Shown here: in pieces, positions 16,082-53,195 of the stretch | Position numbering within the stretch: the first letter of the stretch is position 1 | Layout of the letters: the number at the start of each line of letters is the position of its first letter | Assembly (NCBI RefSeq): GCF_963853765.1 | Contig: NC_088857.1 | Location: 48,360,001-48,424,000, forward strand | Reading direction: 5' to 3' | From: Magallana gigas | Taxonomy: Eukaryota | DNA length: 64,000 bases | The notes under the pieces: model-generated | The model's input: only the letters and a program-made list of their open reading frames with translations | Told to the model about the DNA's origin: nothing | Database searches by the model: none | Translations under genes and position numbers: made by a program

Positions 16082-19000
16082 TCAGTAAAACTTCACGGCA
16101 CTGAGGGCGTGGTCAAGGCTTTCCTTGCTGGGTAGTGCTGGATACAGGGCGGTGGGGCAGGGAGGGGTCAGACTGACCTGTGGGACAGACTCTACACTCG
16201 GACTGACTTGTGGGACAGACTCTACACTTGGACTGACCTGTGGGACAGACTTTACACGCGGACTGACATGTGGGACAGACTCTACATGACTTGATTTATC
16301 CTGCCACTGTGGGTGCGGTTCTTTTATCGGGGAGTATGGGGGTGGATCATCAGTTTCCTCATCTGTCATAATGTAAACATGCAGATGTACAACAAGAAGT
16401 ATTATTAAACATTGAAACATCAAGCACTCTACATTATTATCCAAATTTTATACAACAAACACATGCCTGTACTTGTGTGTATACTTTTACAGGCAATACA
16501 TATAATATCCCAATAGATTTTCTGAGGTTTGACACTTCCCATCTTTTATCAAAGTTGCATATTAAATGCATTAATTTGAAATGCAGATTAGAATGCTTGT
16601 TATGATTGATCAACATGTACAAGCAATGCTTTTAAAAGCAGTCTATTTTTCTTTATCATATATTTAAAGCACCATTTTTTCTTATTTGAAACAGAAGATA
16701 ATTCATATCTGTCAAAAAGAAACTTACTTCATGTACTATGTATTATACACTACATATGTTTTATATTTCTGAAGCTACAGTGTAGGAGTATGTCCAGTAC
16801 CCTATTAGATATTGTTTGAAATGTTTATTACGAGACAAGAGCAAACTTAAACCAGTGAAACAGAACTGTTACACCTGAAGATAAATACATGTATTTCGTC
16901 TCACCTTTGTCCTGGCAGTGATAGGTGGGAAACGGTAGAGGAGGGTTGAGTCGGAAGGACTCCCGCCGGTAGCTGTGGAGCTTCTCTTTGGCTTTGTACA
17001 AGTAGTTCTGGGTTTTACTGGATCCTGTGTATACATTTGTACATGAATGAACATGAATAACAATACAACATACATCTAACATCTAAAATATAATCATACA
17101 AAGCGCAGAGACACTTGGAGTTCCAAGACGTCAGAATGAACTTTGATTCAACCAATCGGATGGCAAGTTACGCTTTCCTGCAAGTGATATTGTTGATGTA
17201 AATTTTTAACAATGTTAACATCAGTTAATGACTTTATCTTACATGCAAACAATTTAGTTCATTTGGACATCATGGAACATGACCATCAGTGGGTCTTGTC
17301 AGATCTTTCTGCACTTTGCACTATTTTAGAGATATGTATTTGTATCAGATTGATATCATACATAACATACAGATGAATGTATCATATTGAAACATGCAAT
17401 CCAGTTACCTGTATATTTGACTTCCTCTAACTCTTTTCCATGGACATCTGGAATCTCCATGGCAACATCCTGTAATAAAATAGGAACAATTCTGATTTTA
17501 ATTGAGAAATGTAAAATAAAATGTCATAAAAGCCAACTGTTCATTTTGTATCTACCAAATGGTCATAATTTAAATGTGCTTTGGTACAGTGCTTTTGATC
17601 AAAAAACCATATCCTTTTAAAATTAAACATTTATCCTTTCTATTACATATTCTCCATGTCAGAATATTTACCTGGCTCGCACACGCCTGACATGAAAATT
17701 ATTTCCCTTTTGTAATAAGATTATTCACTGTACTAATATTCAGGGAACCCTTTAGCGTTAGGATACATATTATTTCAGTATTTACCTTTTGAGCCTGAAA
17801 CACAGTGGAACACTTCTTGCCCAGTTCTACATAGGCCTCAGCAATTCGCACAAACCCTTCTTTTAGCCGTATCATCTTGACAGCTTCATTTTCCCGAATT
17901 CTCTCAGTGACTGCAATACAAAAATTTCAAATTTCTTTTTTCCTTACAACTACCAGTAACTTTAGAACAAGTGTAAACAAGATTTATTTTTTTTTTTTAA
18001 AAGAGAATCTAACACACTTATCCATTATATCACAAAGCAAGAGGCACATGGTTGTCACAAAAAATTTGGTAATTGGGGAATAATATTTTTTTTTCACATG
18101 TTTATTTTATAACTATGTCTAGCTCTCAATCTCATGGACATTGAATAACTGAAGTCTTATTAAACAAAAATACATGTACACTGGTAGCTGGACTGTGCTA
18201 TATTCTCATAAAGGTTAATCCTTGTTGTTTAGTGTCCCTCCCTGTTGTTTAGTGACACTCCCTGTTGATTAGTGTCCCTCCCTGCTGTTTAGTATCCCTC
18301 CCTTTTGTTAAGTGACACTCCCTGTTGTTAAGTGACCATCCCTGTTGTTAAGTGACCCTCCCTGTTGTTTTGTGACCCTCCCTGTTATTAAGTGAAGTGA
18401 CCCTCCCTGTTGTGAAGTGTCCCTCCCTGTTGTTTAGTGACACTCCCTGTTGATAAGTGTCCCTCCCTGTTGTTAAGTGACACTCCCTGTTGTTTAGTGA
18501 CACTCCCTGTTGATTAGTGTCCCTCCCTGTTGTTAAGTGACACTCCCTGTTGTGAAGTAACCCTTCCTGTTGTTTAGTGTCCCTCCCTGTTGTTAAGTGA
18601 CACTCCCTGTTGTGAAGTGACCTTGTCTGTTGTTTAGTGACCCTCCCTGTTGTTAAGTGACCTTCCCTGTTGTTTAGTGACCCTCCCTGTTGATAAGTGA
18701 TTCTCCCTGTTGTTAAGTGACACTCCCTGTTGATAAGTGATCCTCCCTGTTGTTAAGTGACCCTCCTTGTTGTTTAGTGTCCCTCCCTGTTGTTAAATGA
18801 CCCTCATTGTTGTTTAGTGTCCCTCGCTGTTGCTTAGTGTCCCTCCCTGTTGTTTAGTCACCCTCCCTGTTGTTTAGTGACCCTCCCTGTTGATAAGTGA
18901 TCCTCCCTGTTGTTAAGTGACCCTCCCTGTTGATAAGTGACCCTCCCTGTTGATAAGTGACCCTCCCTGTTGTTAAGTGACCCTCCTTGATGTTTAGTGT

Positions 19001-22000
19001 CCCTCCCTGTTGTTAAGTGACCCTCACTGTTGTTAAGTGTCCCTCCCTGTTGTTTAGTGTCCCTCCCTGTTGTTTAGTGTACCTCCCTGTTGTTTAGTGA
19101 CCCTCTCTGTTGTTTAGTGTCCCTCCCTGTTGTTAAGTAACCCTCCCTGTTGTTTAGTGTCCCTCCCTGTTGTTTAGTGACCCTCCCTGTTGTTAAGTGA
19201 CCCTCCCTGTTGTTAAGTGACCCTCCCTGTTGTTAAGTGACCCTCCCTGTTGATAAGTGACCTTCCCTGTTGTTGAGTGTCCCTCCCTGTTGTTTAGTGA
19301 CCCTCCCTGTTGTTTAGTGACCCTCCCTGTTGATAAGTGATCCTCACTGTTGTTAAGTTACCCTCCCTGTTGATAAGTGACCCTCCCTGTTGTTAAGTGA
19401 CCCTCCTTGTTGTTTAGTGTCCCTCCCTGTTGTTAAGTGACCCTCACTGTTGTTAAGTGTCCCTCCCTGTTGTTTAGTGACACTCCCTGTTGATTAGTGT
19501 CCCTCCCTGTTGTTAAGTGACACTCCCTGATGCTTAGTGACACTCCCTGTTGATTAGTGTCCCTCCCTGTTGTTAAGTGTCCCTCCCTGTTGTGAAGTAA
19601 CCCTTCCTGTTGTTTAGTGTCCCTCCCTGTTGTTAAGTGACACTCCATGTTGTGAAGTGACCCTGTCTGTTGTTTAGTGACCCTCCCTGTTGTTAAGTGA
19701 CCTTCCCTGTTGTTTAGTGACCCTCCCTGTTGATAAGTGATTCTCCCTGTTGTTAAGTGACACTCCCTGTTGATTAGTGTCCCTCCCTGTTGTTAAGTGA
19801 CACTCCCTGATGCTTAGTGACACTCCCTGTTGATTAGTGTCCCTCCCTGTTGTTAAGTGTCCCTCCCTGTTGTGAAGTAACCCTTCCTGTTGTTTAGTGT
19901 CCCTCCCTGTTGTTAAGTGACACTCCATGTTGTGAAGTGACCCTGTCTGTTGTTTAGTGACCCTCCCTGTTGTTAAGTGACCTTCCCTGTTGTTTAGTGA
20001 CCCTCCCTGTTGATAAGTGATTCTCCCTGTTGTTAAGTAACCCTTCCTGTTGTTTAGTGTCCCTCCCTGTTGTTAAGTGACACTCCATGTTGTGAAGTGA
20101 CCCTGTCTGTTGTTTAGTGACCCTCCCTGTTGTTAAGTGACCTTCCCTGTTGTTTAGTGACCCTCCCTGTTGATAAGTGATTCTCCCTGTTGTTAAGTGA
20201 CACTCCCTGTTGTTAAGTGACCTTCCCTGTTGTTTAGTGACCCTCCCTGTTGATAAGTGATTCTCCCTGTTGTGAAGTAACCCTTCCTGTTGTTTAGTGA
20301 CCTTCCCTGTTGTTTAGTGTCCCTCCCTGTTGTTTAGTGACCCTCCCTGTTGTTTAGTGACCCTCCCTGTTGTTTAGTAACCCTCCCTGTTGATAAGTGA
20401 TCCTCCCTGTTGTTAAGTGACCCTCCCTGTTGATAAGTGACCCTCCCTGTTGTTAAGTGACCCTCCTTGTTGTTTAGTGTCCCTCCCTGTTGTTAAGTGA
20501 CCCTCGCTGTTGTTAAGTGTCCCTCCCTGTTGTTTAGTGACCTTCCCTGTTGATTAGTGTCCCTCCCTGTTGTTTAGTGACCCTCCCTGTTGTTTAGTGA
20601 CCCTCCCTGTTGATAAGTGATCCTCCCTGTTGTTAAGTGACCCTCCCTGTTGATAAGTGACCCTCCCTGTTGTTAAATGACCCTCATTGTTGTTTAGTGT
20701 CCCTCCCTGTTGTTTAGTGACCCTCCCTGTTGTTAAGTGACAATCCCTGATGTTTAGTGACCCTCCCTGTTTATAAGTGATTCTCCCTGTTGTTAAGTGA
20801 CCCTCCCTGTTGATAAGTGATCCTCCCTGTTGTTAAGTGACCCTCCTTGTTGTTTAGTGTCCCTCCCTGTTGTTAAATGACCCTCATTGTTGTTTAGTGT
20901 CCCTCCCTGTTGTTTAGTGTCCCTCCCTGTTGTTTAGTGACCCTCCCTGTTGTTTAGTGACCCTCCCTGTTGATGAGTGATCCTCCCTGTTGTTAAGTGA
21001 CCCTCCCTGTTGATAAGTGACCCTCCCTGTTGTTAAGTGACCCTCCTTGTTGTTTAGTGTCCCTCCCTGTTGTTAAGTGACCCTCCCTGTTGTTAAGTGT
21101 CCCTCCCTGTTGTTTAGTGTCCCTCCCTGTTGTTTAGTGTCCCTCCCTGTTGTTTAGTGACCCTCCCTGTTGTTTAGTGTCCCTCCCTGTTGTTAAGTAA
21201 CCCTCCCTGTTGTTTAGTGACCCTCCCTGTTGTTAAGTGACCCTCCCTGTTGTTTAGTGACCCTCCCTGTTGTTAAGTGACCCTCCCTGTTGTTTAGTGA
21301 CCCTCCCTGTTGATTAGTGACCTTCCCTGTTGTTTAGTGTCCCTCCCTGTTGTTTAGTGTCCATCCCTGTTGTTTAGTGTCCCTCCCTGTTGTTAAGTGA
21401 CCATCCCTGTTGTTTACTGACTCTCCCTGTTGTTTAGTGACCCTCCCTGTTGTTTAGTGACCCTCCCCCTTCCAAACCTCACCTTCAATTTCAGCTTTCT
21501 CTCTTTCCATCTGAGCTTCATGTAATTTGGATTCCAGATTTCTTAAATCAGCTTCATTACTTCTCTGAAATTTGTTAGTAAGGTCAAAAAATTAACACTG
21601 CAAAAACAGTCATTGGTCTTTTAATCATATAACCAAGCACAAAAAGCAATCAATACATTCATCTTCAGAACAATTTCCTACCTACAATGTTATTCAAGTA
21701 CAATTCTCTGTGATACATACATAAAATAGTACATTTATGTACCGGTACATGTAAAAGACAGAAATTTAATATCGCTGATTATTTACAGTTGTTGAAGGTT
21801 TGGTGTGAAATTTATTTCTAATAAGTAATAAGAATGGTATCTGCTAGTGGTATTCATGCAACATGGCTTAAAATATAAAGAGTCTCCACACTATCACATC
21901 TTCACATTATTGAAGATCACTGGTCTACATTTGAGACAATAATTACTAAATAATGCATGTCTGTAAAAGAACATGCATATTCATTCATGCCAAATTCAAG

Positions 22001-25000
22001 GATAAACTGTTATTTATCTGAACATGCTTGGTGTTAGTCCAGAAGTCAATTTGAAATAAGAAAGAACTCGTAAATGCAGATATTATTTCAACAATAAACT
22101 TCATTAATAAAAAAAAATTGATTATTTAGCCCATAGCAACCAGCTTCAAATGGGCCATGAGATTCTGAATTCTTTGAACATGAAATCACTGAGGAAAGAG
22201 TGAAATAACAGAAATATTGAAGTGATGGTTTAAAGGAAAATAACTCTAAGAAAACACAACATCAGACATACTTTACCACTTCCACAAAACATAATGAATT
22301 TGGGTTTAAACACAGACTGTAATTACATGTAATCAATGTAAAACACATACTGTAATTACATGTCATCAATGTAAAACATAGACTGTAATTACATGTAATC
22401 AATGGTTATAGATAAGTTAGTGGTTTTAATGCTATTGGGTATTTTTTCTACTCCTTGTCAATCATAATCAAATAATAACAAGTACAGTGACACATGTTCT
22501 ACTAAGATAAAAGAATATTTTTTTATTCATGTATTTTGATATGATTTATCTCATGCTTTATCTATCTTCAGAACTGATGACTAAAAATGCTCCCACTCAT
22601 TTTTGAGATAGTGAAAATTTAATATCACAGAGTCTGCTGAATGTAATACTGACCTTTTCTGCCTTCCTGAGGTCCTTTCTCAGCTTGGTTTCTTTCTGCT
22701 CATAGTTATTCTGAAGAATGAGATTCCGTTAACTTTTCTACTTAATGATCATTTTATTTATCATAACCTGACATGTATACTACAGTAAACTGTAGTCTTG
22801 ACATTTAAATAGGTATTTACAGTACTATTTTCATTGACAGTTTTTGTAATCACTTTGCCCTGTGTAGTGTATCTTGGTGAATTGCAAATAAATATTATTA
22901 GTGTACAGTTATAACCTAGATCCTTTAAAAACTTGTAGCCTGCACAACTGCATACTACATGTTTTTCTAATAAATTCATTCATGACAAAAAACTACAAGC
23001 TACAAACAATATTGATGCCCATGTTATTTATATGTACCAGTATACTTACCAGGTTATCTTTGGCCTGTAATACATGTTTTTCTCCCTCCAGCACCATCTC
23101 ATACATTTGCTTATACTCCTTCAGATGTCCTTAAAATAAAAAGAAAGAATGATAAAAAAAAAAAAAAAAAGGATTACACTAGTATTCATAAAACATTCTC
23201 ACTTCTCCCTCTTATACTTTAATTAACTTGTACAAGGAGAACACTGTGTTGAAGATCAAATGACGAAGTGTGTGTCACTTGACATGCTCAAATTTGTATA
23301 TATATGCTACTATGAATTTAAGGTCAGACACAAATAAATACTAGTAAATACTTTGTATTGGTAATTAAATGAAGAGGAATCAATTATTTTGCATAAAATT
23401 ATGAGAAGCAAACCCTGTGAACTTTAAACATTACTTTGAAAAGCGCACTACCTGTGAATCTAGTCATATAATTTCATTCAATGATTAAAGTAGCATATGC
23501 CTGACTATTCGGTAGTACAGTAAAACTCATTTAGTACGAACACGGATATTGCGAATTTACGGTTATAGCAAAGTCATCTTAGATCCCCAGCTATGTAAAT
23601 TTAATGAATTTCTTATAAGGTTATAACGAATTACGGATATAACAGAGTAATTTCTTAGGTCCCAGTGACTTCGTTATAACCGAGTTTTGCTGTATATTAC
23701 CATTTACCGGTACATGTTTTTCTTATTCAATACCAACCAATAAAATCTTTCTGTACATCTGTCCACAAAAGGTTTAACTCTGCAATGTGGTTGGCTACAT
23801 CCTACAAGGTAATAATAAAATAACTGTAATTCTCTACAATAATCTTTCATAAAAATATTATTAAGTCAAACTCTTATGAAGTGTAATAGTGCTTGCTCTT
23901 AGAAGCATGGCAGTACTGAGCCTATTAATTTATACACACTATCCCAGCTTAAATACCAGGGGTACTTACCGAATCATGATAAAAACTGAAATTAAACATG
24001 TGATACATCTACTCTGTTTGAAATGCATGCATATAAATGAATTTAATACGGTACCAATTAGAGCCAACCAAATACCGGAGCAGAACCAACTAAACCCTAG
24101 GTTTACTTTTGGGGTTTACTCTGGGTCTGCTTTTGGAAAATTTGCATTCACTCAACAGGTTTACTTTAGGTCCATCCGGGATTTACTTTGGGTTTGCTTT
24201 TGGCTGAAGTGTGAAGCAGACCCATCTTGTATCTTACCATCTTACTGCCTGTAATTCTTGTCCATTGTATATTCCAAATACACATGTAGCGTCTGCTTTC
24301 AGGGGTACACCTCTGATCGGGGTTTACTCTCAAAATCCACTCTGGATTTACTTTGGTTTTACTCTGGGTCCTCTCTAGTAAAACCGAAGTAAACCCAGAG
24401 TAAACCATGAGAGTAAACCAGGATTTAGTTGGAGTTACCTTTCTGCTAAGTAGGGTATGATCAGTACAGTAGTTTTAAAATTCATTACTCTAAAACATGT
24501 AAAACTAGAATAATTTTATTTAAAAATTCTATTTTTCAAAAAGCTTTGAATATCGAATTTTTTGTTGTTAAAACTGATCAACATAGTCTTATTATGTTAT
24601 CAATTATGTTATTAGTGGAATACTAGTATGTTAACCTGAATGGCCCTGTTTTCTTCATTGGCCGCCCATCGCATCATATCCTGACATGCTACAAGGGAAA
24701 ATTAAGATTTACACTTAATTGTGAAAGTCTTCAAAATCTATCCTATTTGGGTTTATCATGTTTATAAACTTACAACTTTGTATAAGGGTAAAATCAGTGA
24801 GATTCATCGAGACCACAGACGTAATACTAACTATATATAGTCTGTCCCAAGATATTTTTGCAGTACATTTGGACGAATAAAGTATACATACATGTGAAAG
24901 AAGTGCAATTGAAATCAATGAAAAGGGAAAATTTCCAAGATAACTAGATTCACACATTACTAATGCAAAAACAAATCTTTAGTTGTTTAGTATCAGTAAA

Positions 25001-26063
25001 ACGAATGATGTAATAAGGTATGCGGATAGTCCGATACGCCGTGCAAGGTTGCGACACAATATTTTGGTCCAGCTTGAGCCATGATTATCATTTTTCATTC
25101 GCAAAAATTCACAGGAAAGAAAACAGATTTATTACGGAGATTTATAATGGGGAATGTTTACATCTTTTCTCCATTCGAAAGTGCCTCAGAATACCTCGCG
25201 TAATTTTTCAGCGTTATCATCCATGGCCAGGCTTACTGCAATGCAAAATCCCCATAGACATCACATTTTTTAGCTGTGTATTGAAGCCTGATAATTGAGC
25301 TAGAGGGGGCGTTTTTAACTGAGAAATACTTTTGAATGAACATTGTTTGAACCCTGAGGTATTTATAAATATCGAGAAATTAGGCAAAATGTGAATCGAG
25401 GATATCTTAGGACAGAGTATATACTGTTATAATATATTTCTCTGTCGAGACTGAACAATTTTGACTCACATCTCTTCAAAAGAGAAACTGAGAAAAGTGA
25501 CATCATTCAAATTTTTCCAGTGTCAACGAATGTTTAGATTACTTTATGGGCAGCGTTTATCATTTACTGTATTATACACATGAATTAGTAGGCAAATGTC
25601 TTTTTTTTTCATAACTAGTACATGGTTGTATAATGATTTTATAAAATCAAAAGCTGCTTTATGTAAAAGATCTTTGGATTACCTGAGTTTTGTGCATTCA
25701 TGAAGCCCTTGGCACTCTCTCGCATATCTTTTAATTCTGACACCATGACATTTAAATCAGCACTTCCCCCTGATCCAAGCGACCTCAACTTGGCACCACT
25801 CCTTAAAAAGGAGAGATTAAAATGTAAAATACGTAAGGGCCCGGAGTACCAGTCAAAACTCACAAAACAGATATGTTGATAAAAGTAAAAACATAACTGA
25901 GAAAATACTTGATATATAATATGTGATAAAAAAAATGAATGCATGATAAACATAGCCTAGTCCTACATTTATATTTGTCATACAAACATAACTGCATGCC
26001 TTTGTTCTTATCTTATAAAGCCTAATTTGCTTACCTTCTTATTGCCCGAGATGCTTTGTCCAT
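16082..26063 (-). CDS. Uncharacterised helical protein, 356 aa, 11 exons; N-terminal ~245 aa resemble the eisosome Pil1/Lsp1 BAR domain; Pro-rich C-tail with PPPY
   Basis: Exons (minus): 26063-26035, 25801-25683, 24688-24636, 23801-23738, 23129-23050, 22710-22654, 21564-21483, 17910-17786, 17469-17409, 17024-16905, 16362-16082; total 1071 nt, all GT-AG with compatible phases; in-frame TGA two codons upstream of the ATG. The gene model is strong; the Pil1 assignment is an alignment by eye and the last exon is less certain. Confidence 0.82.
18220..21468. repeat. 3.2-kb minisatellite, 20-bp unit CCCTCCCTGTTGTTTAGTGA (~160 copies), in intron 7 of the Pil1-like gene
   Basis: Direct tandem array with variant units and duplicated higher-order blocks (e.g. 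280-nt offset between 19481 and 19761). Confidence 0.98.
22316..22405. repeat. 33-bp tandem repeat, about 3 copies
   Basis: ACTGTAATTACATG recurs at 22316, 22349 and 22382. Confidence 0.85.
23518..23692. mobile_element. MITE with TA TSD and CAG...CTG termini (Tc1/pogo-type)
   Basis: TA|CAGTAAAACTC ... GAGTTTTGCTG|TA; a related truncated copy starts at ~45051 (TACAGTAAAACACGG). Confidence 0.8.
24086..24432. mobile_element. Inverted-repeat element rich in GTTTACTC/GAGTAAAC submotifs
   Basis: CCAACTAAACCCTAGGTTTACT ... AGTAAACCAGGATTTAGTTGG terminal inverted repeats; TSD not resolved. Confidence 0.7.
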
Positions 26064-27419
26064 CTTTGTTCAGTTTTCCCCTAGCTGATACACATTTGTT
26101 TTTCTGTACCAAATCACATTCCAGAAACTGTCAAGAAGCCAGTCGTGTGGACAATTTAAAAACGCGAATGTTTACAAATTCAATTTCCGCGGGGTAGTGA
26201 CGTCATATTTCTAAAAAATGAATTTGTACTAAAAATATTTCGGAGTCCGGAATCCCCTCTTTCAAAATGAAAGTAGCATAACAAAGGACAAGAGAAATAT
26301 GAGAGGTGAGATCATGTAATCTTTAAAACGAAATAAAGATTTAAATATCAAAAAGGTCTTCTTTAAGTATATAGTAACATGTTATATAAAAGGCCTATAA
26401 GGCTATATGAAGTCAATAAACTGATAAATTGCTTTGCTTCAACTGCTGATCGAGAATGGGGTTTTTTTCCGGATCCACCCATTATAAATGATAGCTTGCT
26501 TTAGTACTCATTTTAACTTCAATATTGTTTGTCATTTACTAATACTTTAACACAATTTTTAAATTCTTGTATGATTATAATAATGTCATAACTGTTACTT
26601 GTTGTGGACTCGGAATTATAACTTTTAAATGTTTGTTCTTGCTTATGCACTCGGACAGTCCCTTAAACATATATACTTCCGTGCCAAATGTATGTGTCAA
26701 TTCCTTTTTCTTGCAATAATATCTCTGTAATTTTTTCGTTTATCACATTAAAGTGGGGATTTGGAGAGATGTAGATTAACTAAAGTATACTGAATGCAGA
26801 TCTATAATTTTTTTAGCACTTGGTATATATTCAGTAAAGTATTTGACAACCAATTTGTAATATAAAACTTCCAAACAATAGTATTTTATTTAGTTACTTT
26901 TAAGAAATCGATAAAGAAGTGACCTTGGCAGGGTTATGTTTTTAAATAATTATAGGCCTATAGAGATTCCGAGGTAAAAATAGTTTTGACATAACTGTAG
27001 CAAATATACACTTTATTTCAAAGTTTTAATATTTGACTATTTTCTGCATGATGCAGATATAACATATATTTTTTTCAAATCAGGGATAATATTTTCTCTC
27101 TCTATACATTGTACTATAGTATATCTATTTTACTTCAGATGTTATACAATGTACCAATATGTGCTATACATGTACCACTTTCATTTACGATATCGTCGGT
27201 CGGTTGTATACTTGGATGCACATCTGATTTAAACCCAGTTGTATAAATGAAAATGTACCCTTTTCACATATGAACGTTTAAAGATTAGGCATACTCGACT
27301 GTTTTCAAATGGAAGATCACCACGGGAATGTTGATTGTGGATTTGCTTGTCTTATTTTCATCCTAGACATACCGGTACTACATATATACTATTGTACATA
27401 TTCATTTCAGGTTGAAAAA

Positions 27420-29609
27420 ATGGGTGGAGATAACAAAAAATCCAACATCGATCGAGACATAGAAGAATTACTTAACATACTAAAATCACTATATGACGAG
27501 CATGGATCAACCATTCCAAAGCTGAAGAAATCGCTGGAGATTTTGCAGACGATCAAAGAAGAGGCAAAAGACCTGCAAGTCTCTTCTGAACAAGACACAA
27601 TCTCTACACTAGATTTGAAGGACCTAGATGTTCCATGGAAAAAGATCGGTGCTGGGAACTTTGGAAGCGTCTTCAAAACAACATGGAAGGGAACATCCAC
27701 CGTTGCAATCAAAGTTTTGAAGGAACAGGCTAAGCACCAAGCCCGCGAATCTAGACTTCTGCGATATCTTAGCCACGAAAACATCATAGCGTATCGGGGG
27801 ATGGGGTACGTGCAGTCTGAGGAGGAACTGAAGCGGATACTGGAAGGCAATAGAGACGAAGAAGTACGAGAGATGTTCCAGGTACCAAGTATGTTCTTCG
27901 TTATGGAGTACATTCCAACAAATTTGTACCGATACATTGTTCAGCAGGAGAGCCACGAGAGGCAGGGTCTCTCCTTGGGCAAGGCTTGGGATGTCGGGAA
28001 ACAGATAGCCAGTGCGCTGAGTTATCTTCACTCAGAGGGGATTGTCCACAGGGATATGAAACCGGACAACATCTTGATCCAAGGTTACGTGAACAAGTTC
28101 ATCATTAAAATCGCCGACTTTGGCTTGGCATGGCAGGATGACCAAATTGACAAGCAGCAGACAAGGTATGGATCCGTGATGTCCGACAACAATACCGTTT
28201 CTCAAGTGAGCGGGTACGGATTTGTGAACATAAGGTGGGGACCACCAGAGTTCCGCTCGTCTTTGGAAAGTGGTAAAAGTCACTCCATGACCGACTACAG
28301 GAAGGGTGATGTCTACTGCTTTGGTTTGATCATGCTATTTACAGTATCTGGGCTCAAACCACTGGCAGAACTGTCTTCATCAAGTATACAGGATGAAATA
28401 GAACTTCCCACGCCGTCTATCCCCAAAGAATACATCGGAGATCCCAACGATATCATTGCAAAGTCAATTATAGAATGCACGATTGATACGCCCGAAAAGC
28501 GACCAACGGCGGAAGATGTTATAGAGAAATTCTATCGAGGGAAAAACCCGTATTTATCGGAAGCAGACGAAGGAGAATTATTTTCATGTGGGTTCATGGA
28601 CAAAACGGACATTTTTGTTGCAGATTCTTGCACAGATGAAGACGCAAGTCAGAAAGGATTTTTCGAGTCCCGAATACGACCATCCGGGTACCAACACGAC
28701 GACTTGAGTTGTCCCATTCAGGTAGAGTCTAAACCGTGCAGGGACAGGTACGAAAACTGGGACAAAGAAGAAGAATACATTGCAAATTACCAGGAATTCA
28801 GCAGACAGGCAAAAGACAAAATAATTGACAACAACCCTACAGTGGCTTTGAAACGCTTGGCGTTTGCTCGCCCAGGTGAGGATGAGTGTCAGAGAGTCGA
28901 GATGTTCTTCAAGCAGTCAGAATATGTTCACCACAGAGCAATGCGGAAAATTTGGATGAGCCTAAATGAACAACAGAAACAAGACGCCATTCCAAACAAA
29001 GCTGATGTCAATCCTTTCTTCAGCAATACATTTGGGCTACATGTGGCTATCCTGACAGACGAAGGCCCAGGGAATCCACAATACTTCGTGTTTCCACAGC
29101 GTGCAAAACGTGCCGGGATGTCTGCCCCTGGTGCCTTTACTTGTGGAGCCGTGGAAAGCGCATCAACTCCTGACATCAAAGGTGAGGGCACTTCAAGAAG
29201 AGTGGATCTAGTCAATACAGCAGTACGCGGTTTACGGGAAGAACTTGGTCTGGAGTTGTCTGGATCTGACACAGAAGCCGTTTGTTTGACCACAATCTAT
29301 TTAAAAACTGACACCCACGAGTGGGGTCTGTGCGGGTTCGTGGACCTGACGGACGATCGGATCAAACCAGAAAACCATATCAGTGCCGACAACCTGAAAG
29401 ACCGCTTTTCTAGCGGACCAAAGGACAAATTCGAGCACCAGACTCTGACATTTGTCAAGTTCACGTTAGAAGATATGGTGGACTTTGTGTTTGAAAACCA
29501 CGACAATTTTGCCAGTTCCGCCAAGCTAGTCGTCGTGAAGGTGCTACAAGCGTTCTTTGGATGGTCGAGAGTCCAAAGGGAGTTTGAGTCGAGAAAGGTT
29601 ACTTCCTAG
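27420..29609 (+). CDS. Ser/Thr protein kinase (TKL-like) fused to a C-terminal NUDT22-like Nudix-fold domain, 729 aa, single coding exon
   Basis: Uninterrupted ORF. Splice acceptor TTCATTTCAG at 27401-27410 implies a non-coding first exon and ATG 27420. Kinase motifs GAGNFG (27648), VAIK, HRDMKPDN (28047), DFG, WGPPE, DVYCFG, KRP. C-terminal FSNTFGLHVAILTD..FVFPQR..PGAFTCGAVE..RGLREELGL (29226-29252). AATAAA directly follows the stop. Confidence 0.93.
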   Translation: MGGDNKKSNIDRDIEELLNILKSLYDEHGSTIPKLKKSLEILQTIKEEAKDLQVSSEQDTISTLDLKDLDVPWKKIGAGNFGSVFKTTWKGTSTVAIKVLKEQAKHQARESRLLRYLSHENIIAYRGMGYVQSEEELKRILEGNRDEEVREMFQVPSMFFVMEYIPTNLYRYIVQQESHERQGLSLGKAWDVGKQIASALSYLHSEGIVHRDMKPDNILIQGYVNKFIIKIADFGLAWQDDQIDKQQTRYGSVMSDNNTVSQVSGYGFVNIRWGPPEFRSSLESGKSHSMTDYRKGDVYCFGLIMLFTVSGLKPLAELSSSSIQDEIELPTPSIPKEYIGDPNDIIAKSIIECTIDTPEKRPTAEDVIEKFYRGKNPYLSEADEGELFSCGFMDKTDIFVADSCTDEDASQKGFFESRIRPSGYQHDDLSCPIQVESKPCRDRYENWDKEEEYIANYQEFSRQAKDKIIDNNPTVALKRLAFARPGEDECQRVEMFFKQSEYVHHRAMRKIWMSLNEQQKQDAIPNKADVNPFFSNTFGLHVAILTDEGPGNPQYFVFPQRAKRAGMSAPGAFTCGAVESASTPDIKGEGTSRRVDLVNTAVRGLREELGLELSGSDTEAVCLTTIYLKTDTHEWGLCGFVDLTDDRIKPENHISADNLKDRFSSGPKDKFEHQTLTFVKFTLEDMVDFVFENHDNFASSAKLVVVKVLQAFFGWSRVQREFESRKVTS

Positions 29610-31569
29610 AAATAAAAAAGAACCGCTTCCATTGTACGGTGAGCTTGCGAGAACGTTTTCCACGTTGCTATTTTTTGAGTACCATAAATGTATACGTATT
29701 ACCTCAGAATATCCATGTTTGTTTTCATACATACACAAGTATTAACATATTTTCCATGTGAACCATGTCATTCAAAGGAATTGAAAACGGATCGGCGATT
29801 AATGTTGGTTGTGATATGATGGTTAAGGTTTTGGAAGTGACAATATCTATGATGAACTTAGATATAAATGGAAAGACAAAATGTTAAGAAACCTATTGTA
29901 ATCATGGCATGAAGCAAAAAATGCCTATGGTCTTTGTGAAAAATGCACGTATAGAACAAAAACATTTTTACAAGCTGACACTGTTCATGATGTATATGTT
30001 GGTGATAGCCTTGAATCACAAAAGGCAAAGTTCGATGAATGTCTGACGAAATTTTAACAAATAATGTCGTCACTGAAATCATTAAGCACAAAATTATCTT
30101 TATTTATGCACACATTTATAATGTTTGCTCATGATTTTTGTAGAATGATTTATCACAAATAAATTATTAAAGCTTGCGAAAATTGCATTGTTTTGTGGAA
30201 AAATAACACGTACGGTATAAATACAGAAAGAGAATTGACGCATGGCGATTGATGTACAAAAGAAACCGTGTGCCATAGTCGCTGTATACCCTGAAACTAA
30301 TTACTAAGACTATCGTGTTGGGAATACTTAGATTTTGACCTTTTCAGATTTGATCAATACTACCAGGTGTCTATAGGAAGAATTGATATATAAAGGCCGT
30401 CTTACTGTTTATTTAGAAATAAATACTAGTATTAAAGGTGAAAAGAAACTATGAACATATGTATCACTTAATTGTAATTTAGATATTTTAGTAAAATACA
30501 TATGCATTCATCTTAAATAAAGATGTCACTTTATCTTGATAATTTGACCAAATCAAAATTCAGCCTAAAGTTAACGTTAAATGGAAAAACAAACCCAGCG
30601 ACTGCGAACAAGTTAATGATCGTCAAATATAAATCTTTTTGTCTAATATAATCCTTATTATGAGGTAACAAATTTTCCATTTGAAAGAGGTAATTTGTTA
30701 TTTTGGTTGCGTAATAACGAGGATAAATGTGAATGGCTGTTCATAATTCAGTTATGCTTTCATATAACGGAGATATTCAAGCATTTCAGAAAACAACACT
30801 GAGGATTTACCTGTATTGTTTTTTCCTTAAATTTATCTACCAACAACAACTCATTATCATGTATTCGCATTCATTATTGAATTCCTCAGAGTTTTGTTTA
30901 AAGTTCCATTTAATGGCTTTCTTTGGCATCATGGGTCTTTGAGCCATGACCTTGAACAATGATCTTGATATGTCAGCCCCCTCATCGTGTGTATTCATGA
31001 CTATTTGTTTCACTGTGTGTATTCGTGACTATTTGTTATAGGGCAATGTGATGCATGGACATAAATGATCTGTCTGAAATTATCATACAATAAAGGTGAT
31101 TAATCGCAGCACATGTTGCCATAGCTTGCAAAAATCTATGTAAATTTTCACTGCATGCACTGTAATAAACATGACCACAAACTTCATTTTCAGTAAACTG
31201 TTCTGAAATTTTTATTGTAATTAAAAGGACAAGGTATTGTGAAATTGTATCACAGTAAGGATCCAGTTTGTCATTGACAAGAATGTTATTGCAAAACTTC
31301 TAACAAAAAATTCCCCAAATTCAGTGCAACGCTATGTCCTCATATTAATTTTTTTTATAGCTTATTCGGTAATTCATGCGAGGAAGTGTTCCAATTTGCA
31401 AAAGGACAACCAAGAGAGTACGGTGTATACAATCGCCTCACTTTTTAGACAAAACACACATGTAATGTAAAATATTGAATTATCTATATAAATAGTTTGA
31501 ATATTCTTTAATTTTGAATGCAATCATTATTGAACACACTAGAAGTTATTACGACTATTATGTAACATA

Positions 31570-48200: not shown

Positions 48201-51200
48201 GGAGTCCAAAATGCTTGCAGAAATTCACTTCCGTCGACTCCGTTTTGGGAGTCCGTCTAGACTGGTCATCGTGTCTCGAAAAAAAATCGTTATTTCGTTA
48301 CGGCGGCCATGTTGCCGTCTATTATTTGCTACTTGCGGACTACAGAAACAAAGATACAAATGAGATGACACATTTTCCAATTATGATGCGCCATTGTAAT
48401 CCGTTGACGGTCAATGAATTCTTTATAAGTCATAAAAGATAGTTCTGATCGTGAGTTTTATACATTTTAACTGAATTTTTAGCAAATTGTGTGCATGGGG
48501 ATATGCAGGAGAAATTCTCCTTCCTGGAGAAGACGTGCGCACAGATAGTGGCCGAAACGCCGTCCCTGTGCTACAAAAACCCTTATGACTACAAGTGTTG
48601 TGACTCCTGCGAGAAAGCTGCTGACAAGTCAAACCCAGGTAAGAGATTACAGAGGGTCGATTAGTTGCGAAAATTAACACGATGATAATTAATGTGTTTG
48701 TTCTTTCCAATAAGATTTTTAAAAAAATACCGAAATTTACCATTTTGGGAAACCAAGAAACAAATATATGTAAATGTGTTTACCTTTTGTAACTATTTTG
48801 GTCTTTGTGTTGATCTAACTTCCTCCAACTTTGCTCTGTACAGATTGTCCATATGGAGACAGGGCTGATACATGCTCCAAGGTTCTTACTAATCCATCAC
48901 TGTGCTACTTTGAGGAAAGAGAGTGCTGTGCTACGTGCAAGAGCGTCAATACTGGACCCGAGGGTGAGCTAGGCGATGAATGACGAATTAACTTTTTGAT
49001 TTATCAACTCCTCCGATACAAAATTGTTGCTATCCTTCTATATGAGAGCAAGAGAAAATTAACATGCTTAAAGCTAAACATGGCTCGTAAAAGGCATTGT
49101 CAAATTAAATTTTACGCACTTTTTCCAAAACAGGGGAAAACTATCATCAATATACAGGTCAACGCATTATTTACAAACAGAAATTGTACATAAAACAAGG
49201 AAAACGCACAAAATTTACCACCAGGAAAGGAGTATGAGTTTCGGGTGTGCAATCAACTTTTACAAAATCGAAGGGTTTACACACTTGTTTAATGATACAT
49301 ATTTATGAATTGTGTTCAGCTTTATAAACAACAACATAAAATAACTAAAGAAAAGCTTTTTAGTGTGTAATTGCATAGTCCTAATTTAATCGACATCATG
49401 ATGTTTCATTAAATATAAATAACTAAAACTTGACTAAAGATTGGGTATGCACACTAGACCAAACATTATCTTGCCTTCAGGATATTTCTTGTTTTATCAA
49501 AATGATTAATCACTAACAATCAAAATTTATATGCGTTCCAGGCTGCCAATATGGAGATAAGATAGACTCGTGCAGTAAATCTGAATGCGGTAAAGATGCT
49601 GCCTATAGAGATAATTGCTGTGAAACATGTGCTGACTATGTACCGACCACTGCCGCTCCCATTGTACTGGCGCCAACGCCAGCACCTACTGAAGCACCAA
49701 CACCAGCACCAACGCCAGCGCCAACTGAAGCACCAACGCCAGCACCAACTCCAGCGCCAACTGAAGCACCAACGCCAGCGCCAACTGAAGCACCAACACC
49801 AGCGCCAACGCCAGCGCCAACTGAAGCACCAACGCCAGCGCCAACACCAGCACCAACTCCAGCGCCAACTGAAGCACCAACACCAGCACCAACACCAGCG
49901 CCAACGCCAGCGCCAACTGAAGCACCAACGCCAGCGCCAACACCAGCACCAACTCCAGCGCCAACTGAAGCACCAACACCAGCACCAACGCCAGCACCAA
50001 CTGAAGCGCCAACAGAAGCGCCAACTCCAGCTCCAGTGCAGACAACACCATCTAACTTTGTCTCAATTGTTGATTATTATGATTCCCTATGTGTTAAGCC
50101 ATTTGTTGAAGTTGGTTTTAGATCCTGTGCATCTAGAGCAGAAGGCATGTCTTATCCGTGTCGATTTCTATCATTTAGGACTTCGTGTTGCACACAATGT
50201 ACAGGTAACGTTTATCAATTCAACAGATTACAGATCAAGTTAGTGTAAAATTTTAAGTTTTCCCCATGCATGCAAACTTCATTTAATATTCAAACTTATC
50301 TAACAAGGCCGAATTCTACTGTTTTTACCATGCATGTAGATCTTTCATTGATAAGACTGGACATTCTACACATTAACTATCAGATCTATATTATACATTT
50401 ACATTAGTTACTTTAGACCCTAAACTGTTATTCAGAAGAAAAGCCATTTAATATTTCGGCTTATAATTTAAGAATTTTCCTATATTTTTATGTAGTCTTT
50501 TTTGCATAAAGAGAGGTAAATATATAACTAAAAATAACCCTGACCAACAAAACTTTAAATCCTGTTATTGATTAATAGCAGTTACGTGTATTTAATTTAT
50601 AAAAGAATGCAAAGACTGTGATATTATTGTAAAAGTAAAGTTAATACCGGTATGCATCAGTTTCAAGTTTAATATGACTAACGAGCTAAGTCAGAGTCTA
50701 CAATAAAGAAAAACATTCTCAGGAAAAAATAAAAGCTTTAACTTTGTAAAATTTGCTTTAAAACAAGTTAGAATGAGAACATTTGAAATCTGAAATGTAG
50801 GTGGTCGCAGTTAGGGGGAGTCTTGGATTAGGGCATAGACACTTAAACTTTCGACTTCATTCACTGTACTACTGGATCAAGTTTATCCAAACTTTAAACA
50901 TATTACCCTTCGTTGATTGGAATTCAAAATTGTGAAAATAAACTTTCATATCTAAAGAAACTGGGCGCACAAGATAGTGAGTTTGCAGGAACCATCGACA
51001 CGAACCAATTGGGGTTTAAATGTCTAAAAGTCATCTTTACAAGTTTCAAATTTGTGGAGAGAAGACCCAGAGACATCATAATCATTTAAAAACAGCTGTA
51101 AATAAGTACGATTTTGCATCAATTCCGCCGTGTTGCTATATTTAGGCCCATATTATGACAAAACCTTTTGCATTTCAAACATTTGTCTGCCCATTCTATG

Positions 51201-52833
51201 TCCAACAGAAACAAAATAACGGTTATAATTCGAAAAATGTCCAAAATTAATCAATGAAATTTTCACTTTTCTTGTGCGCCCAGATTCCTGCCGAATCTAC
51301 ATCTTAAGCGCCCACTTTCTTTGCCAAAACTCTCAGGCAGAAGCGACGATCTAAAATGGCTACAAACAGAATAGGGGAGCTCTTAAATAAATATTAGGGA
51401 TGTATAGTTTTCTCGAGAAAGAAAACTATGCTAAATTTTGATTCACATATAAGTATGAAAGCATCCTAAAATAATGTTGGTTAAAATCGATTTATACCCA
51501 ATTATTTAAATCGATTTACATCAAATCCCATCAGCTACCCCCCCCCCCCCCCCACCCCCTGAAAAAACCGAAAACTCACAATAGGGATGTGCATAAACAA
51601 TTTTGGTCGATCTTCATTGTATATATATCGAACATTGATCGCACTCTTCAAAACAATGCGTTTTGAGAAAAAATAATCTAAGAAAGAGATACAAATAAAT
51701 GTATTTACTAAAGATGTAATGCATCGGCAAGCAAAATAGTCAGTGGGTCTCTGGTCTTGTTTTTTGTTTGATTTTTATGCTGGTATAGCAAAATGATGGT
51801 CGAAATATTTTCGTCTTCACCATATAGAATGTTCCGATAAACAACTTTGTGGGGATGTGAAGCCGGGTTACTGTTACTACAATCAGACACGAAGGGACTG
51901 CTGCGAGTCATGTGCTAGAGCCGCTGAATTGGAACCAGGTAAAAATATTATCCCTTAAAAATGTAACCAAGGATTTTTTACGATATGATTTCTATAAAAC
52001 AATATTTTTAAAGTTTTCATCTTAAGGAAGTTGGACGATCAACAAATTAACCATAAGATTTGCCTTAAACTTTTCAATATATTTTGTATACTGTAAAGTA
52101 TTATAAAGTTAAAAATAAACATATTTTAGCTTCACAATTGGACCATTTTACTTAATCTTCATTCAAAGACTGTAAATATAGCGACCACCCAGCCCCCTTA
52201 AGGTTTAATTGAAGGCAACAGCTTGAACATGATAACAACGAATATTCTTGTTTAAAGTACTAAAAGGACAGACGTTTTTTCTGTAATTAAATTTTAGATT
52301 GCTTGGGGGATGCAAGTCCATTTTGTGCACACTTTGTTCAACTCGACGCAGAATATACCTGTTCGAGATACGGAAGAGCTTGCTGTAGATCATGTGGGTT
52401 CGTGAAGTTCAACAGTCTTTTTGCCCGTTCTGCTAAAAACGACCCCTCAATATTAAAAGCAAGATCTCGGATAGACTCAGTCATGGTAAAAGTCGCTGAT
52501 CCAAACAGTCTTATTGATCTGAGGAAAGATTTTCTGCACACTGTCGATGAATCGGTACAATTGGAAAATGCCGGAATTTCAAACTCAACTCCAAAGCCCA
52601 CAACCCCGAAACCACCAAGGAAGAAATTTTCACCGAAGAACCGCCGTCGATTTGGTCCCAATTCAAGAACACGGCGACCGACTCGGCGATTCTTTAACCG
52701 GCCTAGTCGGCGCCCTGCAGCTAGCAATCGGCCCGCTCCGACACCAAGACCAAGGGGTTTTAATAGGTTAAGACAAAGATTGCAGAACTTACGGGGCTCT
52801 TTGGCTGGACGAAGAGGGCGTCTTTTGGGATGA
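36021..52833 (+). CDS. Secreted ADAMTS-type (reprolysin/M12B) zinc metalloprotease with six PLAC-like Cys modules, Pro/Thr linker and Arg-rich tail, 1174 aa, 19 exons
   Basis: Exons 36021-36090, 37101-37318, 37656-37748, 40391-40604, 41769-42135, 42371-42464, 42902-42976, 43739-43896, 44068-44120, 44620-44725, 44886-45044, 45794-45953, 46059-46178, 46318-46369, 48483-48638, 48844-48963, 49542-50204, 51828-51938, 52298-52833; total 3525 nt with compatible phases. Signal peptide, RRKR furin site, HELGHSLGAQHD zinc motif, WKFSSCS, PGQ..QC..G disintegrin-like region, [15 protein letters not shown], repeated C..C..C..CC.xC modules. Confidence 0.92.
38836..38877. repeat. (CT)n microsatellite
   Basis: Visible CT run. 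Confidence 0.97.
40605..40975 (+). repeat. 29-bp minisatellite (~12 copies) starting at the exon-4 donor of the protease gene
   Basis: GTAAGAC/GTAGGAC recurs at 40638, 40667, 40696, 40725 and onward; unit approximately GTAAGACTTATTGTTACAAGTAGAGAAAA. Confidence 0.92.
42176..42242. repeat. (TA)n microsatellite
   Basis: Visible TA run in intron 5 of the protease gene. Confidence 0.98.
46398..48264. mobile_element. 1.87-kb non-autonomous TIR element with 5-bp TSD (GTCAT), unclassified
   Basis: GTCAT|CAGTCTAGACGGGACTCCCAAAACGGAGT ... ACTCCGTTTTGGGAGTCCGTCTAGACTG|GTCAT; ACTCCCAAAACGGAGT is repeated subterminally. Confidence 0.85.
46894..47696. mobile_element. 803-bp TTAA-TSD element (Kolobok-like), copy 1, nested in 46398-48264
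   Basis: TTAA|AGCTATACACGCTATAATTTACGTCAATTTTGAAT ... ATTCAAAATTGACGCAAATTATAGCGTGTATAGCT|TTAA. Confidence 0.93.
49669..50035 (+). repeat. Coding 12-bp-based repeat encoding (APTP)n(APTE) mucin-like linker
   Basis: GCGCCAACGCCA/GCACCAACTGAA units within exon 17 of the protease. Confidence 0.95.
50957..51286. mobile_element. ~330-bp inverted-repeat element
   Basis: GAAACTGGGCGCACAAGATAGTGA vs TCACTTTTCTTGTGCGCCCAGATTC; TSD not resolved. Confidence 0.55.
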
Positions 52834-53195
52834 AAGGTTCTCGTCAATCAACATAGTGCTCTGTTCCGTTTGTGAAGGACATGTGCAATAAACAAATCTT
52901 GTTTTTCCCTTCACTTAGAGTGTAAACTTCTCAGCTAATATGAATTTGTTGCTGTTTCAAGTAACTATCGTCTACATCGTGTATCCGTTGGTTATGACGT
53001 CTCACTAATAGTATAAAATAAAGTAAAAGGAAACTGATTCACGTTTATTTTCTTAGATTATTAGTAATTATTGTGATGTTGTTTCTAAATAGTCACGACA
53101 GTTCTTCATTAATTTGAGAACTTATATGGATAGTTGCACGGTATCGAAAATAATTTTTATGTAAACTTTATTCTATTTGTCCACATTTAATTTAA

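Follow-up and report, generated by a model that had tools for sequence, protein, structure and literature searches.

An oyster gene for a protein kinase fused to a predicted NUDT22-type Nudix module, with orthologs across animals and relatives in prokaryotes

Nudix domains joined to an output domain are known from TRPM2, a channel whose C-terminal NUDT9-H Nudix domain binds ADP-ribose and, in invertebrates, hydrolyses it, and from NrtR/AraR, in which a Nudix fold is paired with a helix-turn-helix (HTH) output. The Nudix site of NrtR is catalytically degenerate and serves as a sensor. Here we describe a gene of the oyster Magallana gigas that encodes a protein kinase fused to a C-terminal module with a predicted NUDT22-type Nudix fold. 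The gene lies in a stretch of 64,000 nucleotides (nt) of contig NC_088857.1 (assembly GCF_963853765.1, positions 48,360,001 to 48,424,000, forward strand), which is called the window below and to which all oyster nucleotide positions refer. The enzymes that its module most resembles are human NUDT22 (PDB 5lf9, 5lor, 5lou), described in the part of its literature covered here as a UDP-glucose/galactose pyrophosphatase, and AtNUDX9, a GDP-D-mannose pyrophosphohydrolase that has been grouped with NUDT22 (PMC4566977). Both are reported to carry a degenerate Nudix motif in which the conserved Arg and Glu are substituted (PMC4566977 for AtNUDX9). In the EACC1-caspase layout of prokaryotic conflict systems, a 5' EACC1 gene is followed by a caspase gene with a variable C-terminal effector, and EADs are adaptors that recruit effector or signalling enzymes (PMC7159879). 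The portion of that source covered here includes Nudix domains (which may act on ADPr or NAD+) in its list of effectors and calls Ser/Thr/Tyr kinases common; within this portion, 'NUDT' occurs zero times and 'Nudix' once, and neither a NUDT22-like module nor a kinase fusion is described.

The oyster protein can be set apart from each of these systems. Like TRPM2, it places a Nudix part C-terminal to an output domain, but that output is a kinase and not a channel, the Nudix part is NUDT22-like and not of the NUDT9 subfamily, and the two show no sequence relationship beyond the superfamily. NrtR/AraR follow the same logic as certain HTH-containing relatives of the oyster module and are among its VIA-align fold matches, but these relatives, unlike NrtR, keep a full conserved core in three of three cases. 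NUDT22 shares the layout of an N-terminal beta-rich domain followed by a Nudix domain (~240-280 residues aligned), but it is a stand-alone enzyme of ~300 amino acids (aa), whereas the oyster module is fused to a kinase; AtNUDX9 has no kinase either. EACC1-caspase and EAD systems are approached by other relatives of the module, one of which carries a caspase domain and follows an EACC1-like gene while another is joined to EAD11, but the oyster protein itself has no caspase, EACC1 or EAD. Finally, IRAK and RIPK share the TKL-like kinase type with the oyster protein, but they have no Nudix module, whereas the oyster protein has no Death domain (residues 1-72 gave no Pfam hit). The features on which the comparison rests are as follows.

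27420..29609, forward strand: complete coding sequence (CDS), 729 aa plus stop, in one exon (open reading frame, 729-aa orthologs, colinear RNA contigs)
27420..27599, forward strand: N-terminal helical hairpin, residues 1-60 (AlphaFold2 helices 6-28 and 33-52; predicted local distance difference test score, pLDDT, ~85)
27627..28535, forward strand: protein kinase domain, TKL-like and of Ser/Thr type, residues ~70-372 (Pfam, E 1e-30)
28047..28070, forward strand: catalytic loop HRDMKPDN, residues 210-217 (direct reading, conservation in orthologs)
28116..28124, forward strand: DFG motif, residues 233-235 (direct reading, conservation in orthologs)
28566..29606, forward strand: predicted NUDT22-like two-domain Nudix module, residues ~383-729 (hhalign boundary, profile, AlphaFold2, Foldseek, VIA-align)
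28575..28721, forward strand: N-terminal extension of the module, E.FSCGF..T.IFVADS...GY..L.C, residues 386-434 (conservation, bacterial alignment)
29226..29252, forward strand: Nudix helix RGLREELGL, residues 603-611, a variant of REUxEExGU (conservation; helix 597-609 in the model)

The open reading frame (ORF) that holds the gene spans 27309..29609 on the forward strand (766 aa) and yields 729 aa from the Met at 27420; it is the sole ORF longer than 220 aa within the window. Most orthologs are also 729 aa long, and a public protein of that length (P0001) is 98% identical to the oyster protein. All of the motifs that the initial annotation had quoted for this ORF are present in the translation, including FSNTFGLHVAILTD, RGLREELGL and HEWGLCGFVDL. 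RNA contigs from four runs of four different studies were aligned over 24600-30500, and these runs were taken as RNA-derived because of their small contig sets and the spliced joints (CT..AC) that they show in a neighbouring gene on the minus strand. In each run a single colinear contig covers the CDS (27422-29689, 27422-29720, 27495-29677 and 27573-29671, respectively), so kinase and module are carried on one intronless transcript, and the fusion proposed in the initial annotation holds at the RNA level. RNA-contig depth is zero over the intergenic interval 26200-27357. The two contigs that begin at 27422, from two runs, start within the ATG codon. The transcribed region is flanked by two further features.

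27401..27410, forward strand: putative acceptor-like sequence, ttcatttcag, 10 nt 5' of the ATG (sequence reading)
29610..30176, forward strand: 3' untranslated region, approximate extent (RNA contigs tile to ~30176 in one run)

All coding variants found in the RNA contigs (10/10) are synonymous third-position changes, against a random expectation of 21% synonymous, and the gene is under purifying selection. Its C-terminal region is 93% identical to a protein of Crassostrea virginica and 90% identical to one of Saccostrea.

The N-terminal ~60 residues, for which a helical structure had been proposed, are indeed modelled as the two helices listed above. They are poorly conserved among orthologs (conservation 0.26), and no Pfam family was matched by the N-terminal 72 aa. 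The proposal of a complete Ser/Thr kinase was likewise upheld: the Pfam families Pkinase and PK_Tyr_Ser-Thr (PF00069/PF07714) match residues 74-370 with 106-108 bits (cut-offs 31.7 and 23.1), and the oyster protein contains GAGNFG, VAIK (K98), the alphaC glutamate E110, HRDMKPDN, DFG, WGPPE and DVYCFG. Across 39 full-length orthologs, conservation reaches at least 90% at GAGNFG, K98, E110, HRD..N, DFG and in the P+1/PPE region; the lamprey ortholog has HCD in place of HRD. Ser/Thr specificity is predicted because the catalytic loop, HRDMKPDN, has the form typical of Ser/Thr kinases. The closest PDB sequences to the kinase belong to TKL-type or neighbouring kinases: CTR1 (1e-17), followed by Raf, Src, LRRK2 and PKR. 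Sequence varies in the activation segment (244-269), which was modelled with low confidence.

The C-terminal module is one conserved unit of ~345 aa. Alignment by hhalign of the animal forms against the bacterial forms gave E 3.9e-56 over residues 374-717 and sets the module start at about residue 383. Residues 386-434 were considered as a linker, and this was rejected since the same alignment puts them inside the module; they include positions that are at least 90% conserved, align with the bacterial forms and contain strands in the full-length model. The tether between kinase and module is only ~10 residues long and is poorly modelled. An exhaustive search of 1.84 billion representatives returned 196 relatives of the module, and an alignment of 92 module sequences (A1) was used as a profile and for AlphaFold2. 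With this profile, human NUDT22 was the first match in the PDB (E 1.1e-4), ahead of IPP isomerase and NUDT17, and the match covers the N-terminal domain of NUDT22 (residues 54-151). The AlphaFold2 model of the module built with A1 has a pLDDT of 94.2 and a predicted template modelling score (pTM) of 0.90. Foldseek found 118 PDB matches to this model at E <= 0.001. The six best are all NUDT22 (E ~1e-9, template modelling (TM) score 0.62 in both directions, ~280 columns), generic Nudix hydrolases appear from E 4e-6 onwards, and the top 50 listed are all of the Nudix fold, IPP isomerase and TIRR among them. VIA-align superposed residues 1-275 of the module model on NUDT22 residues 31-290 (Z 20.1, 242 residues, 3.3 Å), with the next folds at 15.2 and 14.6 and the Nudix structures ranging over Z 12-20. 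The best structure-atlas matches were bacterial clusters named 'Nudix hydrolase domain-containing' (TM 0.81) and plant 'Nudix hydrolase 9-like' models (TM 0.71/0.70 over 249 residues), and a language-model search returned bacterial hypothetical proteins together with a NUDT22-like cluster. One relative of the module passes the Pfam NUDIX gathering score. The initial annotation had assigned a NUDT22-type Nudix fold to this region from its motif layout, and this assignment is supported by the agreement of the profile, the AlphaFold2 model, Foldseek and VIA-align.

The active-site positions of the module are strongly conserved. Compared with the consensus GX5EX7REUXEEXGU, the segment RGLxEELG retains the R, E, E, G and hydrophobic positions; in the 92 aligned sequences R603 never varies, and conservation is 93% at E607 and 97% at E608. 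A wider core of eight residues (R561, E579, D585, R603, E607, E608, D669 and E672) is intact in 82/92 relatives. Sorted by partner, the core is intact in 23/25 animal proteins, 6/6 TIR, 3/3 caspase, 3/3 HTH and 1/1 EAD11 fusions, and in 3/4 of the other kinase fusions. This pattern reads as evidence for metal-dependent diphosphate chemistry, and because the core is intact in so many relatives, an active hydrolase is favoured over a dead sensor. The degenerate motif of NUDT22 and AtNUDX9 is not shared, since the residues at issue are retained (R603, E607, E608), and the oyster family has R-x3-E-E with extra invariant acidic residues, unlike NUDT22. For this reason the module would represent a sister family with NUDT22 architecture and not NUDT22 itself; at only 14-16% identity it appears to be a sister family at best. 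As both characterised enzymes of the fold class hydrolyse nucleoside-diphosphate (NDP) hexoses, an NDP-sugar is a reasonable first guess at the substrate.

More than 60 full-length orthologs combining kinase and module were found. They occur in bivalves, a gastropod, a chiton, a brachiopod, a hemichordate, amphioxus, tunicates, sea lamprey, anthozoans and homoscleromorph sponges. The kinase-Nudix family is therefore pan-metazoan, and the bivalve setting given in the initial annotation proved too narrow. The lamprey protein aligns colinearly with that of the oyster (34% identity, E 5e-129) and retains both active sites. Among the hits examined, no name from a jawed vertebrate, arthropod or nematode was seen, which does not prove absence. 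In the tree, the animal proteins form a monophyletic clade (97 in the Shimodaira-Hasegawa-like approximate likelihood ratio test, SH-aLRT) that broadly tracks the species tree, and the module is more conserved among orthologs than the kinase. The Nematostella ortholog has 9 coding exons and that of amphioxus ~13, with introns within both domains; the intronless oyster CDS is thus a secondary state. The gene is conserved at about 1:1 across animals and is single-copy in the oyster assembly (564 Mb, 29 contigs), which is not the usual pattern of an expanded invertebrate immune family. An amphioxus paralog (P0040, Branchiostoma belcheri) has a Death domain N-terminal to its kinase (E 2.6e-9). Protist relatives of the module come from Andalucia, as a kinase fusion, and from Gefionella. 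In the malawimonad Gefionella okellyi (P0208 / P0103), the module is preceded by ~400 N-terminal aa that match no Pfam family and show no recognisable kinase; they may be a further unknown partner domain.

Database names of the orthologs are 'uncharacterized' or borrowed from kinases, and one Mytilus fragment was auto-named 'Nudix hydrolase domain-containing protein'. The initial annotation had raised the prospect of a widespread, already annotated family: widespread the fusion is, but it is annotated under kinase names or as 'uncharacterized' and not as a fusion. Its statement that no animal kinase-Nudix fusion had been described agrees with our finding no published account of one; the literature coverage was incomplete, and this is absence of evidence only.

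The bacterial relatives that had been proposed in the initial annotation were recovered by the sequence search, with the hhalign match given above. In most prokaryotic relatives, which are ~380 aa long, the module is preceded by a hydrophobic helix at the N-terminus and a basic stretch that probably form a membrane anchor. The domains joined to the module in a set of 70 distant relatives are TIR (6), kinase (4), caspase (3), EAD11 (1) and PilZ (1), and HTH fusions account for 3/70 (two, plus one that is MerR-like). The module is rare, with 3 carriers among 401 genomes sampled from one phylum (~0.7%), one of the three having it as another TIR fusion, while the atlas clusters hold several hundred members of the bacterial family. 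Genomic contexts of the prokaryotic relatives are islands of defence or mobile type, among them an integrase/AlpA island and a restriction/nuclease/helicase island. PADLOC matches within the relatives (PDC-S66, ThsB, PD-T4-6, mad6) fall in TIR or kinase parts only, so the module itself is not a modelled defence protein. When compared with the oyster kinase, the kinase domains of two fusions (P0137 and P0146) reach only 17-30 bits, less than plant CTR1 with 67 bits. A single ancient origin for all kinase fusions was considered and is disfavoured by these scores; P0137 and P0146 are more likely independent fusions, since their kinases resemble that of the oyster no more than generic kinases do. 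P0070 aligns colinearly with the oyster protein. As the fusion probably arose more than once, a functional affinity between kinase and module is suggested.

Bacteroidota proteins of 757 aa in atlas clusters combine a TIR domain, a Hexapep/GMPPB_C domain (a sugar-nucleotidyltransferase C-terminal domain) and the NUDT22-like module, which hints that NDP-sugar chemistry and TIR signalling may meet in one protein. The bacterial caspase-module protein P0131 (caspase domain E 5e-16) is preceded directly on its 5' side by an ORF of 132 aa, EACC1-like, that contains a hydrophobic stretch rich in small residues. The two form a two-gene unit (L011:396-2607, L012:1579-3790) in the order EACC1-like ORF, then caspase and module, as in the layout of PMC7159879. 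This unit adjoins small ORFs together with a ThiF/E1-like gene, and the other strand encodes a BTAD protein; the ThiF/E1-like neighbourhood may be a separate ubiquitin-like conjugation or defence locus.

We put at roughly 60% the probability that the oyster protein is a bifunctional signalling enzyme, in which a predicted competent TKL-like Ser/Thr kinase is combined with a NUDT22-fold Nudix pyrophosphatase. The Nudix module would bind and hydrolyse a nucleoside-diphosphate-linked metabolite. Its likeliest substrates would be an NDP-hexose, by comparison with NUDT22 and AtNUDX9, or an ADP-ribose/NAD-type compound, by comparison with the TIR partners. The short tether would couple this Nudix chemistry to the output of the kinase in a single signalling step, and either the ligand may control the kinase or the kinase may control the hydrolase, the two directions put forward in the initial annotation. 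The prokaryotic module would serve as an effector enzyme or signalling domain exchanged between proteins of conflict systems, and an early eukaryote or animal would have retained it fused to a kinase. By analogy with described systems, the prokaryotic module occupies effector slots in its EACC1-caspase, EAD11 and PilZ fusions. This position, at which output enzymes sit, and the conserved core shift the interpretation from sensor to active enzyme. An immune role of the oyster protein is suggested only by analogy.

Several observations weigh against this interpretation. The Nudix box is non-canonical, as the Glu of 'RE' is replaced by Gly and the upstream G-x5-E-x7 spacing is altered (CGxxE..S..D with a longer loop). 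Used alone as a query, the oyster module had no match in Pfam, its NUDIX family included, in NCBIfam or among PDB sequences. The full-length model has a pTM of only 0.54, and the geometry between the domains is not fixed. The match of the 132-aa ORF to EACC1 is weak (E 4e-4, 20.8 bits vs the cut-off of 23.6). HTH fusions and varied output domains would also be expected of a ligand-sensor domain.

The last point leads to a ligand-gated kinase, in which the module would be mainly a receptor for a nucleotide-derived second messenger or metabolite and an allosteric switch of the kinase, with hydrolysis merely resetting it. Resetting of this kind is known from the ring-nuclease CARF/SAVED domains and from the catalytically active NUDT9-H of invertebrate TRPM2. 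One and the same module is joined to TIR, caspase, HTH and kinase domains, the last from at least two unrelated lineages, as well as to a membrane anchor, which is a classic sensor pattern. The very short tether between kinase and module, the existence of Nudix-fold sensors such as NrtR among the fold matches, and the occurrence of the prokaryotic fusions as single genes with no obvious partner also fit. Against it, Nudix sensors such as NrtR are catalytically degenerate, whereas the core is intact in 82/92 relatives here. The module also stands in the variable effector slot of the EACC1-caspase layout and follows EAD11 and PilZ, positions at which one would expect an output enzyme, and no cyclase, CD-NTase or other signal-generating enzyme was seen beside the relatives examined. 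We regard the ligand-gated kinase as doubtful, but a sensing function is still to be taken seriously, given the HTH fusions and the varied partners.

The same non-canonical Nudix box and missing Pfam match could instead point to a non-catalytic scaffold or protein-interaction domain, as TIRR/NUDT16L1 is for 53BP1, that would target or autoinhibit the kinase, and TIRR and syndesmos structures are among the fold matches. The TIRR match, at Z ~12, is nevertheless far below that of NUDT22 at Z 20, and eight charged residues that are near-invariant from bacteria to lamprey are hard to explain without metal or diphosphate chemistry; a scaffold is improbable. The intronless CDS in an intron-rich genome and the mostly prokaryotic origin of the other relatives might also raise the suspicion that two adjacent genes were merged, that the gene is a pseudogene, or that it stems from bacterial contamination or a recent horizontal transfer. 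We give this hardly any credence. Single RNA contigs cross both domains in four studies, and the coding variants are without exception synonymous. The gene is embedded in a contig of chromosome scale, where spliced animal genes flank it; introns lie inside both domains in the orthologs of Nematostella and amphioxus (9 and ~13 exons), and the animal clade broadly fits the species tree.

The kinase gene is divergent from a neighbour at 24635-26182 on the minus strand, which is spliced at 24688^25683 and 25800^26034 with CT..AC ends. About 1.2 kb separate the most upstream exon of this neighbour from the kinase CDS, and given this divergent spacing a bidirectional promoter region may be common to both genes. 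At 24994-25190, summed RNA-contig depth reaches 440-1273, vs 20-50 for the kinase gene, and the interval shows many short contigs, odd joints and loose ends; it is probably an expressed repeat or transposon fragment within an intron of the neighbour. Elsewhere in the window, a minisatellite of 3.25 kb at 18219-21467 comprises 162 copies of the 20-bp unit TCCCTGTTGTTAAGTGACCC (86% matches) and accounts for the odd composition at 18-22 kb (GC 0.43-0.46, AT skew -0.33 to -0.40). ORFs of 215, 176 and 169 aa lie at 49596-50243 (forward strand) and 52303-52847 (both strands), and no Pfam family was found in the two that were scanned.

The kinase-Nudix fusion represents a new, conserved animal domain architecture built from two well-studied superfamilies, the protein kinases and the Nudix hydrolases. 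As the family was not seen in the standard model animals, it marks a blind spot in kinome and innate-immunity catalogues. A bolder interpretation, which we think unlikely, is that the module would act as both receptor and terminator of an as yet undescribed, intracellular NDP-linked animal signal that the kinase relays, as an ancient conflict-system inheritance parallel to cGAS-STING/TIR signalling. If this were true, the signal could for instance be an NDP-sugar or a messenger derived from ADP-ribose, produced upon infection or stress. The pathway would then have persisted from sponges up to lamprey but disappeared from jawed vertebrates, insects and nematodes, and this pattern would account for its having been overlooked. 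The Nudix module is compact and confidently modelled (pLDDT 94), and Nematostella, Ciona and oyster haemocytes offer tractable hosts. The identity of its substrate would give the first functional handle on the bacterial family, and the oyster protein and its orthologs are a candidate addition to the animal signalling parts of prokaryotic conflict-system origin.

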